A stretch of DNA of 32,000 bases, taken from the NCBI GenBank assembly GCA_000002975.1, contig AJ010592.2:60001-92000 (forward strand). Direction: 5' to 3'. This DNA is from Guillardia theta nucleomorph (taxonomy: Eukaryota; Protista; Cryptophyta). Below, piece after piece: positions 3,710-18,272 of the stretch. The translations under genes were made by a program, and so were the position numbers. The notes below the pieces were generated by a model. It did not search any database and had not been told where the DNA came from. It was given only the letters and a program-made list of their open reading frames with translations. Position 1 is the stretch's first letter, and each line of letters begins with the position of its first letter.

Positions 3710-4138
3710 ATGAAAAACAAAATATTATTATTGATAATTATTCAATGCTTTAAGAAAAAAAAGGAAAAAATATTCAGACTTAATGTATTTTCTTTTATCA
3801 ATATTATAATTTTAAATTTTTTACTTTATTTCAAATTGTATAAAAATAAAATTACAATTAAATCAAAAATCAACTTTATGACAAAACAATTTCTCATCAA
3901 CGAAAAATATATTCTATATATGTTGAAGAATTTAATATTTGAAAGAATTTATACAAAATTAGAAATTTGCAATATTAAATATCAAAATTTAAATATCCAC
4001 AAATATTCAAATACGTTAAAGTATCTAATAATAAATTATTTAATTAATAAAAAATTTAAACTTAGAAAAATAAAATTTAAAAAATTTTATTCTACTAACA
4101 AGATTTTTTTCCATTTATTTATCATTAATGTTTTTTGA
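3710..4138 (+). CDS. Hypothetical ORFan (F/I/N/K/Y rich)
   Basis: 142-codon open frame; no recognisable motif. Confidence 0.45.
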   Translation: MKNKILLLIIIQCFKKKKEKIFRLNVFSFINIIILNFLLYFKLYKNKITIKSKINFMTKQFLINEKYILYMLKNLIFERIYTKLEICNIKYQNLNIHKYSNTLKYLIINYLINKKFKLRKIKFKKFYSTNKIFFHLFIINVF

Positions 4139-4232
4139 ATTCTAAAAATCTTTTAAGATGTATAAAACAAACAATTGTATTAAATGAAAAAAAATATATA
4201 TTAATTAAATTAATTCTATTATCAACTTTTAA

Positions 4233-8534: not shown

Positions 8535-8924
8535 ATGTTAGATATAAATGATAATATTGTTTTAAAAACTAAAAAATTTAAAAATAATCCGCTATTAAAA
8601 AGAAAACAATTTTTGTTAAGCATTGATCGTAAAAAAAAATTTAATATCTCTAAGGAATGGCTTCGAATAGAGCTTTCTAAATACTATAGAATCAAAGACC
8701 CTTCTTTAATATTTATTTTTGGACTTAAAAATAACTTTGGTGGTTTTAAATGTTCTGCCTTTGTATACATTTATTATAATTTGGAAGCTGCAAGGGTTAA
8801 CGAGCCGAAACATAGATTGATAAAAAATAATTTAATGAAACTTGAATTACAGTCATCAAAGCAAAGAAAAGAAAAGAAAAACAAAATGAAAAAATATTTT
8901 GGTAACAAAAACAAAAGTTTTTAA
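8535..8924 (+). CDS. rps24: 40S ribosomal protein S24 (eS24)
   Basis: NPLLKRKQF, IFIFGLKNNFGG, EPKHRL, KQRKEKKNKMKK. Confidence 0.95.
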   Translation: MLDINDNIVLKTKKFKNNPLLKRKQFLLSIDRKKKFNISKEWLRIELSKYYRIKDPSLIFIFGLKNNFGGFKCSAFVYIYYNLEAARVNEPKHRLIKNNLMKLELQSSKQRKEKKNKMKKYFGNKNKSF

Positions 8925-9984: not shown

Positions 9985-10075
9985 TCCCGTGTGGTCTAGA
10001 GGTTATGATGTCTGGTTACAATCAGATTTCATTTATAATCCCAGAAGATCACGAGTTCGATTCTCGTCACGGGAG
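9985..10075 (+). tRNA. trnE: tRNA-Glu(TTC) with two anticodon-loop insertions (alternative reading: ACA anticodon with one 18-nt intron)
   Basis: TCCCGTG TG GTCT AGAGGTT ATGATG TCTGG T[TACAATCAGA]T-TTC-A[TTTATAAT]C CCAGA AGATC ACGAG TTCGATT CTCGT CACGGGA G; Glu-type body; T6 run follows. Confidence 0.75.
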
Positions 10076-10127: not shown

Positions 10128-11315
10128 ATGTTTATAAATTCATTTTGTCTTAAAAATTTATTACCTGTATTCTCAAAAAATAAAACATTTTTACTAAATG
10201 TAAAATGTTTATCTAATAATAAATTTGAAAATCATTCAAATTTTTTCAAAATAAACAGAACAAAATTTATTAACTATTTGTTATATCCAACTTTAACCTC
10301 ATTATATCCTAAATTCACTCATGCAAATACAACATCATGGACTAAAGTGGATTTACCTGTGGACAGTGTTCTTTTCGATATTGAATTTACTGATCCTGAA
10401 TGTAAACACGGATGGTTAGTTGGCTCTAAAGGAACATTTTTAGAAACAGATGATGGTGGAAACACTTGGGTACCTAGGACCTTCGCAAATTTAGATCCTG
10501 ATGAAGAACTGACCTACAGATTTGAAAATATTAGTTTTGAAGGACAAGAAGGCTGGGTAATCGGAAAACCAGCAATCATTCTTTATACAAAAGATGGAGG
10601 AAAGACTTGGTTTAGAGTGCCTGTTTCTCCAAAATTACCAGGCGAACCTTGTTTAATCAAAGCATTGGGATCTGAAAGTGCAGAACTAACAACAACATCG
10701 GGTGCAATATATGTTACAAATAATGCAGGAAGAAATTGGAAAGCACAAGTTAAAGAAACTATAGACTCTACACTTAATAGAACTATATCTAGTGGCGTAT
10801 CTGGAGCTTCTTATTTTACAGGTAATGTAATAAATGTAATTAGAAATAGTGAAGGAAAATATTTAGCAATTTCCAGTAGAGGTAATTTTTATTTAACATG
10901 GGAGCCAGGTCAAGATTTCTGGATACCTCGTGCAAGAGAGACTTCAAGAAGAATACAATCTATGGGTTTTATCCAAAATGATAACCAAAAAGGAATTTGG
11001 ATGTCAACCAGAGGAGGAGGTTTAAGTGTATCTACTAAAAATTTTGACTTTGAATCGATTAGTAGTTTTAATTTTGAAAATATTGACATTAAAACTGGTG
11101 GATATGGAATTTTAGATGCTGCTTTTGTAAACGACAAAGATATCTGGATAATTTGTGGAGGTGGAATAGTGTATAATTCAACTGACAAGGGAAAAAATTG
11201 GACTAAAGTAGATGGAATAGATAAACTTTCTGGTAATCTTTATAAGATAAAATTTGTCAATAATAATAAGGGATTTATTTTAGGATCAAATGGACTATTG
11301 TTAAGATATCAATAG
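10128..11315 (+). CDS. hcf136: PSII assembly factor HCF136/Ycf48, plastid-targeted
   Basis: BNR repeats (TDDGGNTW, TKDGGKTW), eukaryote-type NRTISSGVSGASYFTG insertion, SSRGNFY, RRIQSMGF; N-terminal presequence. Confidence 0.97.
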   Translation: MFINSFCLKNLLPVFSKNKTFLLNVKCLSNNKFENHSNFFKINRTKFINYLLYPTLTSLYPKFTHANTTSWTKVDLPVDSVLFDIEFTDPECKHGWLVGSKGTFLETDDGGNTWVPRTFANLDPDEELTYRFENISFEGQEGWVIGKPAIILYTKDGGKTWFRVPVSPKLPGEPCLIKALGSESAELTTTSGAIYVTNNAGRNWKAQVKETIDSTLNRTISSGVSGASYFTGNVINVIRNSEGKYLAISSRGNFYLTWEPGQDFWIPRARETSRRIQSMGFIQNDNQKGIWMSTRGGGLSVSTKNFDFESISSFNFENIDIKTGGYGILDAAFVNDKDIWIICGGGIVYNSTDKGKNWTKVDGIDKLSGNLYKIKFVNNNKGFILGSNGLLLRYQ

Positions 11316-11341
11316 ATTTTTAAAAATAATATTTGTAATTT

Positions 11342-11455
11342 TTATCCACAAGTATTGGGTGAATAACAAAAAAAAAAATTTAAAAAGTAATTATTCAGAT
11401 GTTACTGAAATAAGTAATTTACATTAAGATCTTAGCATAAAATCTACTATAATTA
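11342..11455 (-). ncRNA. U2: U2 snRNA, short and highly diverged (ends approximate)
   Basis: Minus strand in order: stem I UAGUA/UGCUA with U-rich loop; GCUAAGAUC (11436-11428); UAAU-GUAA-AUUA; stem IIa UUCAG-UAACAU-CUGAA; Sm-type AAU11G; 8-bp 3' hairpin UUAUUCAC/GUGGAUAA. Confidence 0.8.
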
Positions 11456-11545
11456 AAACAATAATTAGTTAGTTTTATAATTAAGTTAAAAGTTGTAAAA
11501 TATAACAAATAAATTAGTATTTTTAGTTTAATATATATCAAAACT

Positions 11546-13093
11546 ATGAAAAATTTGATATCAGAAAATGTTTCAATTGAAAATGGAATTGAAAATTTAA
11601 TTTATAATAATATAAATGCATGTCTTAAATTAAAAGATTTAATTTTTTCATCTTTTGGACCGTTTGGGAAAAAAAAAATGCTATTTAATAAAGAAAGAAA
11701 ATTGACTTTGACATCAGAAACCTCCACAATATTTGAATCATTAAAATTTATTCATCCATCATCTAAACTCATTACTTCTTATATTTTTTACCAGGATAAA
11801 GAGTTTGGAGACGGATCGGGTCTTTTGTTTTTGTTAAGTTGTGAAATATTAGAGAAATCATTGTATTTAATCAAAAAAGGTTTTTTTACTTATCAACTCA
11901 TCAATTGTTTAAAAAACATTGAAAAAATTTCATTAAAAATATTAGAACAACTTGCAATATATAAAATTAAAGATGCATCTAATTTTAATACGATTTCTTC
12001 AATTCTCTCAGTGTCTTTTTTTCCTTTAATACAGGAACAATCTTATTTTATATCCCCACAAGTTGCGTATGCTTGCATAAAGATTATCAATGAAAAAAAT
12101 TTTAAACTTTCATATGATAACATAAGAGTAGTAAAGATATTGGGTGGAGATATCAAAGATACAAAAACCATAGCTGGTTCTGTACTTTTAAAAGATTCAG
12201 AAAATAACATTAAAAACATTGAACATGCAAAAATTGTTATTTTTATTTCTAATTTTGATTTTTTGGAAGTAGAAACAAAAAAAAAAATGCGCATAAATAA
12301 ATGGGAAGATATTTTAGAACTAGAAAAAATTGAAACACGCGCTTTAGAAAAAAAAGTTTATATGTTAAGGAATAAAGGTATAAATTTAGTAATTGCATCT
12401 AGTTTTTCAGAAAAGTCAATTTATTTTTTAAATAAACATCAAATAATGGCAATTAAAATTAATTCCAAATTTGATCTTCAGAGAATTGCCAAAACTACAA
12501 ACTCCATTGTTCTTACCAAATTTAAAGTTCCAGATGATGACGAAATAGGCTACTGTAAGAAAGTTTATGTTAAAAGTCTTGAAACTCAAAAAATAACAAT
12601 ATTTCAACAAAATTTTGACCAGTGTGAATTATGCACTATATTACTTAGAGGTAATACAAACGTCATACTAAATAACTTGGAAAAGTGTGTATTTAAGGGT
12701 ATATCATTATTCAAGAGTATCATGAGAGACGAGCGATTTGTACCAGGTAACGGATTGACTGAATATGAAATATTTTTAAAGCTTTTAGAATATAGTAATA
12801 AATCAATCAATTCAGAGGTTTTTATTACTTATTCTGAATGCTTTAAAAATATTCATAAATATTTAATAAATTTACAAAAAGACCTCCGACGTGAACTGAC
12901 TTTTGAAAGTTATTTTACATATAGAGAAAATGTAAATTTACATTCACAAAATCAAACTTTAAAAAAGTTTCCATACCAAAAAAGTGTTAAGATATGGGAC
13001 CATTATTCTACTAAATACTGGTCAATTAAAAATGCATTTGAATGTTCTTCAATTATATTAATGATAGATCAAGTCATAATGTCAAAAGAATAA
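11546..13093 (+). CDS. cct8: Chaperonin CCT subunit theta (CCT8)
   Basis: SSFGPFGKKKM, EFGDGS, DNIRVVKILGG, SKFDLQRI, KYWSIKNA...IDQVIMSK. Confidence 0.92.
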   Translation: MKNLISENVSIENGIENLIYNNINACLKLKDLIFSSFGPFGKKKMLFNKERKLTLTSETSTIFESLKFIHPSSKLITSYIFYQDKEFGDGSGLLFLLSCEILEKSLYLIKKGFFTYQLINCLKNIEKISLKILEQLAIYKIKDASNFNTISSILSVSFFPLIQEQSYFISPQVAYACIKIINEKNFKLSYDNIRVVKILGGDIKDTKTIAGSVLLKDSENNIKNIEHAKIVIFISNFDFLEVETKKKMRINKWEDILELEKIETRALEKKVYMLRNKGINLVIASSFSEKSIYFLNKHQIMAIKINSKFDLQRIAKTTNSIVLTKFKVPDDDEIGYCKKVYVKSLETQKITIFQQNFDQCELCTILLRGNTNVILNNLEKCVFKGISLFKSIMRDERFVPGNGLTEYEIFLKLLEYSNKSINSEVFITYSECFKNIHKYLINLQKDLRRELTFESYFTYRENVNLHSQNQTLKKFPYQKSVKIWDHYSTKYWSIKNAFECSSIILMIDQVIMSKE

Positions 13094-17894: not shown

Positions 17895-17992
17895 TCACAA
17901 AGACCTTACAAAAAATTTTGATTAGGTATCATAATCAAATTATATTAAATTAAATACATATATGAGTAATCATTGTTGAAAATGGTAAGTAA
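17895..17992 (-). ncRNA. Candidate U1-like snRNA antisense to the rps27 5' end (speculative)
   Basis: ACUUACC at 17990-17984; GAUUAC in a hairpin; 8-bp hairpin 17939-17917; Sm-type AAUUUUUUG at 17917-17909. Confidence 0.35.
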
Positions 17993-18272
17993 AGTTAATT
18001 TTTAGTTAGACGATCTATTATAATGCAAGCGGTTTGACAGTTTTAATCTATTAAATGAAGAATTAGAAAAAATGAAACATAAAAAAAAAAGAATTATACC
18101 AAATCCAAATTCTTATTTTATTAATATTATTTGCAAAAATTGTAAAAACAAAAATATCATATTTAGTCATTCTCAGACAAAAATTGTCTGTAAAAATTGT
18201 GCATTAAATTTGTGTTATCCAACTGGTGGTAAAGCTAGATTGATAAAAGGCTGTAAATTTTCTAGATTCTAG
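17982..18272 (+). CDS. rps27: 40S ribosomal protein S27 (eS27), join(17982..17984,18030..18272)
   Basis: Splicing restores the expected N-terminus MRFDSFNLLNEELEKMKHKKKR...PNSYF, followed by C-x2-C...C-x2-C and PTGGKARL. Confidence 0.92.
17985..18029 (+). other. 45-nt spliceosomal intron directly after the rps27 ATG
   Basis: ATG|GTAAGT...GCAAG|CGG, phase 0; the intron carries in-frame stops; the CAG at 18040 would be out of frame. Confidence 0.82.

Follow-up and report, generated by a model that had tools for sequence, protein, structure and literature searches.

The U2 snRNA of the Guillardia theta nucleomorph was listed as GtNM-R2, with a length of 107 nt, by Åsman, Curtis and Archibald in 2019 (PMC6461891). 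GtNM-R2 reads were present in all six small-RNA libraries, including those treated with exonuclease (TPM 88-272), and the RNA was identified manually, covariance models having failed (PMC6461891). Its resistance to the exonuclease (TE) treatment indicates that GtNM-R2 is probably capped. The text of the same paper describes three U2/U6 helices, calls the branch motif canonical and states that stem-loop IV is missing. [quoted passage not shown] No second U2, the canonical GUAGUA type included, was revealed by two published covariance-model screens of this genome, and our own scan of the window (the whole 32,000-nt stretch of DNA analysed here) found no canonical second U2 within it. For Chroomonas mesostigmatica, the genome paper lists U6 alone and no U2. 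Splicing in the G. theta nucleomorph reaches about 60% of intron reads.

The window belongs to AJ010592.2, which we take to be G. theta nucleomorph chromosome 2 (record GCA_000002975.1, 180,915 bp; window position = AJ010592.2 record position minus 60,000); its gene set and its G+C content of ~24% agree with this identity. The U2 gene lies in a 230-nt gap between hcf136 and the gene for the CCT theta subunit. The RNA encoded at 11450-11344 is the already published GtNM-R2, and its discovery itself is not new; the first-pass annotation of this DNA had rightly supposed that a small-RNA survey might list it. The published GtNM-R2 sequence, which like that of U6 was taken from a machine-read table with a few garbled letters, has the same ends as in the window and the same sequence apart from these letters. 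The RNA had been placed at 11342-11455; it does lie there, but its first A is at 11450 rather than 11455, and it ends at 11344. The letters quoted for it are found on the minus strand with the elements in the claimed order, and its miniature size is borne out by the comparison with RF00004 (107 nt vs 192 nt). The features of the locus, together with the intron discussed below, are given in window positions:

9985-10075, plus strand: intron-containing tRNA, directly upstream of hcf136
10128..11315, plus strand: hcf136 (YCF48), the syntenic anchor
11450-11344 (AJ010592.2 71450..71344), minus strand: U2 snRNA gene (GtNM-R2), 107 nt, from sequence and published RNA
11439..11448, minus strand: U2/U6 helix II strand (U2 nt 3-12), perfectly complementary to 10 nt in the 3' part of U6
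11427..11445, minus strand: stem I, 8 bp (nt 6-13 with 17-24), from predicted fold and compensatory change
11427..11436, minus strand: U6-pairing segment with helix Ib (GCU) and helix Ia (GAUC, extended by U24)
11436-11428, minus strand: GCUAAGAUC, single exact copy in the window
11423..11427, minus strand: linker UUAAU, 5 nt, from the alignment of six U2s
11422-11417, minus strand: branch-point recognition sequence GUAAAU
11394..11409, minus strand: stem-loop IIa, UUCAG/CUGAA, 5 bp with a 6-nt loop
11386..11390, minus strand: UUACU, possible stem IIc partner, of which the ACU core alone is conserved
11381-11367, minus strand: putative Sm-like site AAA-U11-G, from sequence
11344..11364, minus strand: terminal hairpin with loop CCAAUACUU, by position and loop motif probably stem-loop IV
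11546..13093, plus strand: CCT/TCP-1 theta subunit gene, divergent from the U2 gene with a 95-nt spacer
17985..18029, plus strand: rps27 intron, 45 nt, GTAAGT...AG

The search with a U2 covariance model that the first-pass annotation had suggested came out negative: Rfam U2 (RF00004) had no match in the window, neither at the gathering threshold (46 bits) nor at E<=10. A covariance model and an HMM built from four canonical nucleomorph U2s (described below) missed the G. theta RNA as well. Addition of the sequence from a sister lineage of G. theta to these four gave a best match with E 0.095, and a model from the sister sequence alone reached E 4.8e-5. The folding energy of the RNA did not differ significantly from that of shuffled sequences (z +0.2 and -1.1). 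With no Rfam match and a fold no better than shuffles, the U2 identity cannot rest on either.

Reading by eye against the published text of the nucleomorph U6 revealed ten bases near the 3' end of U6 to which U2 nt 3-12 are perfectly complementary; a wobble pair at nt 2 extends this helix, and three more pairs are possible at nt 13-15 past a bulge. GCU and GAUCU of U2 complement the catalytic region of the same U6. By itself the 10-nt helix II segment lacks significance, with 0.40 occurrences expected by chance; the helix II motif followed by the helix I motif within 1-4 nt was found once in the window and in none of 100 shuffles. This complement in U6 and the joint motif support the helix I/II pairing expected in the original reading. 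Although the G. theta RNA stays below the model threshold and lacks GUAGUA and stems IIb/III, its orthology and its pairing with U6 place it in the U2 family, and the identity first proposed for it holds by its synteny with Rfam-positive U2s, its complementarity to U6 and the published GtNM-R2.

Four other cryptophyte nucleomorphs, those of C. mesostigmatica and of three metagenomic cryptophyte lineages (L036, L044 and L048), carry an Rfam-positive U2 just downstream of hcf136 on the opposite strand:

L036, 11328-11438, minus strand: U2, Rfam 64 bits
L048, 11280-11427, minus strand: U2, Rfam 63.8 bits
L044, about 4030-4171, minus strand: U2, Rfam 52 bits
C. mesostigmatica, CP003681.1 64186-64347 (= L051 11495-11656), minus strand: U2, Rfam 65.9 bits

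Upstream of hcf136, the intron-bearing tRNA and an ATP-binding gene are also syntenic, and the intron-containing tRNA before hcf136 is kept in five other genomic loci examined. The neighbourhood of U2 and the CCT theta gene is not kept in other lineages; synteny via this gene reached no U2 orthologue and is uninformative because the gene is rearranged there. In L046 and L047, whose sequences end about 250 nt after hcf136, no U2 match was found. As far as sequence comparison goes, we regard the U2 assignment by orthology as solid. A 74-aa ORF called on the strand opposite the Chroomonas U2 overlaps it and is probably spurious.

A transcript contig of the sister lineage contains a G. theta-type U2 at the same place behind hcf136. 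The hcf136 of this lineage is 79% identical to that of G. theta, groups with it in a rough tree and is 91% identical to a named Hanusia phi fragment, which suggests that the sister lineage is probably Hanusia. Between sister lineage and G. theta, the U2s are identical at 77/109 positions overall, at 26/28 in the core from stem I to the branch sequence and at 21/24 in the terminal hairpin, and hcf136 third codon positions are 57% identical. A freshwater metagenome contig (X14) shows 57 differing letters and 10 gaps over ~710 nt in comparison with the window; it appears to represent a Guillardia-like nucleomorph strain, about 91-92% identical over window 11000-11713. Its changes fall into the stem I loop, the stretch after the branch sequence, the IIa loop and the U-tract. 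Among the differences listed none affects GCUAAGAUC, GUAAAU, the stem of IIa or the terminal hairpin's core, with 22 lower-ranked differences outside those listed.

Pattern scans of viral contigs came up empty or with chance matches. A pattern scan of metagenomes revealed no further nucleomorph U2; apart from chance matches, it picked up GUAAUA copies from other eukaryotes. Among these, a full-length U2 (124 bits) with GUAAUA is identical in three samples (L028 3493-3688, L029 349-544, L031 1505-1700); it comes from a eukaryote of 24-25% G+C and may be another natural case of the G-to-A change in U2, or a single deviant among multiple copies. U2 copies that are truncated or degenerate and bear changes of the GUAAUA type (L010, L011, L013, L019, L021, L025, L026, L030, L032, L033) lie on eukaryotic contigs of 36-41% G+C and are probably pseudogenes.

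The six nucleomorph U2 RNAs were compared on separate alignments of their 5' and 3' halves; a global MAFFT alignment was misaligned and was dropped. The 5' halves gave a gap-free GAUC-N5-GUA alignment with invariant GCU and GAUC, and this gap-free alignment from GAUC to GUA fixes the register of the branch sequence. The 5-nt linker is found in all six cryptophyte nucleomorph U2s and is one base longer than in the Rfam consensus; the four canonical-type U2s have GCUUUGAUC in place of GCUAAGAUC, with an extra A in the linker. In this register GUAGUA is indeed replaced by GUAAAU in G. theta, as had been noticed from its sequence. GUAGUA is kept in all four Rfam-positive nucleomorph U2s and the sister lineage reads GUAAUU, so that GUA is invariant in the six U2s, GUAA is common to G. 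theta and the sister lineage, and the two final positions are variable. Within this sample of six lineages, the comparison places the change from GUAG to GUAA on the branch leading to Guillardia and its sister.

Stem I is predicted in G. theta and in the sister lineage with all pairs kept, including one compensatory change from U-A to A-U. The stem of IIa is invariant and its loop variable. Pair conservation in stems I and IIa is assessed on two sequences and is statistically weak; the change of X14 in stem I falls into its loop. The Sm-like U-tract is longer than usual in G. theta and shorter in the sister lineage. No stable stem IIb is predicted in the G. theta U2, and a single hairpin follows the Sm-like site; stems IIb and III, said to be absent in the first-pass annotation, are effectively gone. 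The loop of the terminal hairpin starts with CYAAYA, a motif that stands at the same place in all six nucleomorph U2s. Chroomonas and L048 have two hairpins after the Sm site, with CYAAYA on the second, which Rfam aligns to stem-loop IV. This position of the motif in the two-hairpin U2s suggests that the hairpin retained in G. theta is probably stem IV and not III as published, judged from the six sequences; the original reading of the terminal hairpin as distinct from stem III agrees with this and goes against the wording of the paper.

Two further elements stood in part. For the branch-point stem-loop UAAU/AUUA the complementarity exists in G. theta, but the stem has no predicted stability and is not conserved: the sister lineage has lost two of its four pairs and could form a 3-bp version in a shifted register. 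A downstream UUACU able to form stem IIc was likewise proposed; its 3-bp core is kept in the three GUAA sequences, in which 5-6 of 7 pairs are possible, but the extensions are variable. In L036, a conserved CUAACACUU motif (about 11308-11316, minus strand) is predicted to pair with the lineage's own AAGUGUAG with one bulged A, and the same nine letters occur in a hairpin loop of the sister lineage, where the complement has decayed. The pairing of CUAACACUU with GUGUAG in L036 resembles a branch-site mimic; this function was dropped for the motif, the pairing being poor by eye in the GUAA lineage.

We consider it very likely that the RNA serves the G. theta nucleomorph spliceosome as its working U2 snRNA, reduced to 107 nt, with a drift history of its branch sequence as proposed here. 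At the locus that U2 occupied ancestrally, the minus strand yields it as a discrete, probably capped small RNA; Sm proteins would bind its U-tract. Stem I would then open, and U2 nt 2-12 and 15-24 would pair with the nucleomorph U6 in helices II, Ib and Ia. G29-U30-A31 would form base pairs at a DURAU site that lies 2-6 nt ahead of the 3' AG, leaving the branch A bulged, and A32 would join this helix where the intron offers a U. The branch helix would then consist of 3-4 weak pairs, mostly A-U and G-U; its weakness may, speculatively, contribute to the splicing level of ~60%. In the ancestor of Guillardia and the sister lineage, the G of GUAG would have become A, turning a G-U wobble into an A-U pair. 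The order that we propose is that AT-rich introns lost the C first, which the G-U wobble made tolerable, and that the change to A in U2 followed, by drift or as compensation. The change from G to A reads best as AT drift, tolerated or mildly compensatory, and the bases beyond it appear free to vary. The failure of Rfam and of the models from the four canonical U2s to detect the RNA counts against a working U2, as does the branch-point stem-loop that is not conserved.

An alternative follows from the first-pass annotation, in which U2 was rewritten for AUUUAAY/UURAY branch sites and the introns of the Guillardia clade were reshaped to match. Published data are compatible with such compensation. 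Of 17 G. theta nucleomorph introns, 12 have DURAU at a distance of 2-6 nt from the 3' splice site (PMC6461891), with D, never C, opposite the changed base, as the change from G to A predicts; against a background of 13.6% per 9-nt stretch this gives a P of about 1e-7 for a motif derived post hoc. Irimia and Roy (2008) had reported YAAY, equally far from the 3' splice site, for 14 of 16 introns. GUAA is also kept across two lineages with 57% identity at hcf136 third positions, and in X14. Positions 5 and 6 of the branch sequence, however, differ between G. theta and the sister lineage, and the fourth-position change from G to A alone is common to both; with GUAAUU in the sister lineage, the idea of the whole hexamer GUAAAU as a co-evolved reader of AUUUAAY fell, and the AUUUAAY prediction is without comparative support.

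The rps27 intron, the one G. theta intron that we examined directly, is without CTRAY, as had been stated, and has AUAAU (a DURAU site) 3 nt before its final AG, with the A at 18023 as the predicted branch point. Its 3'-proximal branch candidate UUAUAAU scores 3.5 with both GUAGUA and GUAAAU and has A, not U, opposite the changed U2 base, against what tight co-evolution would lead one to expect; this intron fails to discriminate between the two readings. In the last 30 nt of five predicted introns of GUAGUA lineages, CTRAY was found in 0/5 and TTRAY in 3/5, neither of which differs from chance in this low-powered sample. These GUAG-lineage introns likewise lack CTRAY and give, if weakly, no sign that C was lost in the GUAA clade in particular. 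We regard U2/intron co-evolution as unproven, and its tight form as possible but unlikely. GTAAGT at window 94 (minus strand) was rejected as an intron start, as it lies in an open frame. The rps24 gene (window 8535-8924) has no intron in G. theta but one at the same codon in L051, L036, L046 and L048 (65-117 nt), that of L046 with a near-perfect TACTAAT branch site.

A bolder version, which we hold to be rather doubtful, would take the Guillardia-Hanusia change from G to A as a true compensatory change selecting U-rich branch sites, joined by the lineage-wide 5-nt linker and by a new CYAAYA stem-IV loop that binds something other than the usual U2B'' site. If true, this would be a natural, phylogenetically bracketed reassignment of the branch-site code in cis-splicing.

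It is highly improbable that the RNA is a decaying relic, still transcribed while splicing depends on an imported host U2, as suggested for U5. Such a relic would fit the missing profile match, the low abundance (TPM 88-272), the spliced fraction of about 60% of intron reads and a nucleomorph U5 that has so far not been found. It sits badly with a core conserved far above synonymous sites, a compensatory pair in stem I, a 5' end that matches the diverged 3' end of the nucleomorph U6 exactly, and U1 and U6 of similar abundance.

Transcripts from the locus fall on both strands. In the small-RNA run X19 (2019), a very small run and possibly a published library, a single contig spans 11339-11472; contigs cannot give strand or ends, and this one carries a non-templated A tail at the minus-strand 3' end (~11339-11344), which fits the published end. 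In the raw-read run X24 (2026), plus-strand reads accumulate over the U2 locus, with non-templated poly(A) added behind 11465 and 11471, which makes them the 3' UTR of the hcf136 mRNA, antisense across the whole U2 gene. The poly(A) RNA at the U2 locus is mostly this antisense 3' UTR (window 11316-11471, plus strand). That the stretch is nothing else, its likeness to U2 being due to chance, would agree with these poly(A) reads and with a fold no better than shuffles, but is already refuted by the published 107-nt small RNA from the minus strand, the absence of which the first-pass annotation had named as fatal to its reading, by the tailed minus-strand 3' end in X19 and by the syntenic Rfam U2s in four lineages. 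Transcript contigs of the sister lineage (L050 1331-1472) and of Chroomonas (L052 2227-2704) end 20-30 nt beyond the U2 5' end; the end in Chroomonas is a genomic A-run, where internal priming is possible. X24 also contains minus-strand reads antisense to hcf136 (11031-11185, depth up to 43).

The five syntenic orthologues, the clade-limited GUAA, the common linker and the stem IV reading are additions absent from the largely open-access literature searched. The orthologues date the change from GUAG to GUAA to one clade and suggest that the retained hairpin be relabelled as stem IV, and GUAA and GUAG lineages with orthologous ribosomal-protein introns offer a clean comparison for the co-evolution of U2 and branch sites. 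Where the text on GtNM-R2 (PMC6461891) describes a canonical motif and a missing stem-loop IV, our comparison gives GUAA for GUAG and a retained hairpin that suggests IV. With RF00004 the G. theta U2 shares the order of elements, GCU..GAUC, UGUA, stem IIa, the Sm site and a 3' hairpin; it differs in its length (107 vs 192 nt), the lack of a model match, GUAAAU, the 5-nt linker, a 6-nt IIa loop, no stable IIb and one hairpin after the Sm site. The U2s of Chroomonas, L036, L044 and L048 resemble it in locus and strand relative to hcf136, in the 5-nt linker and in CYAAYA near the 3' end, whereas in them GUAGUA is kept, stem I is canonical and a genuine stem IIb is present, and those of Chroomonas and L048 have two post-Sm hairpins.

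Two more distant systems compare with it in part. The U2 of Leishmania major (PMC4950102) also has a rewritten branch sequence (UUAUAA) and no stem-loop III, but it serves mainly trans-splicing, is transcribed by Pol III and belongs to an unrelated lineage; it is a convergent precedent. The U2 of the Bigelowiella natans nucleomorph (130 nt) is shortened like that of G. theta in an independently reduced nucleomorph, but it keeps GUAG and stems IIb and III and, as published, is without IV.
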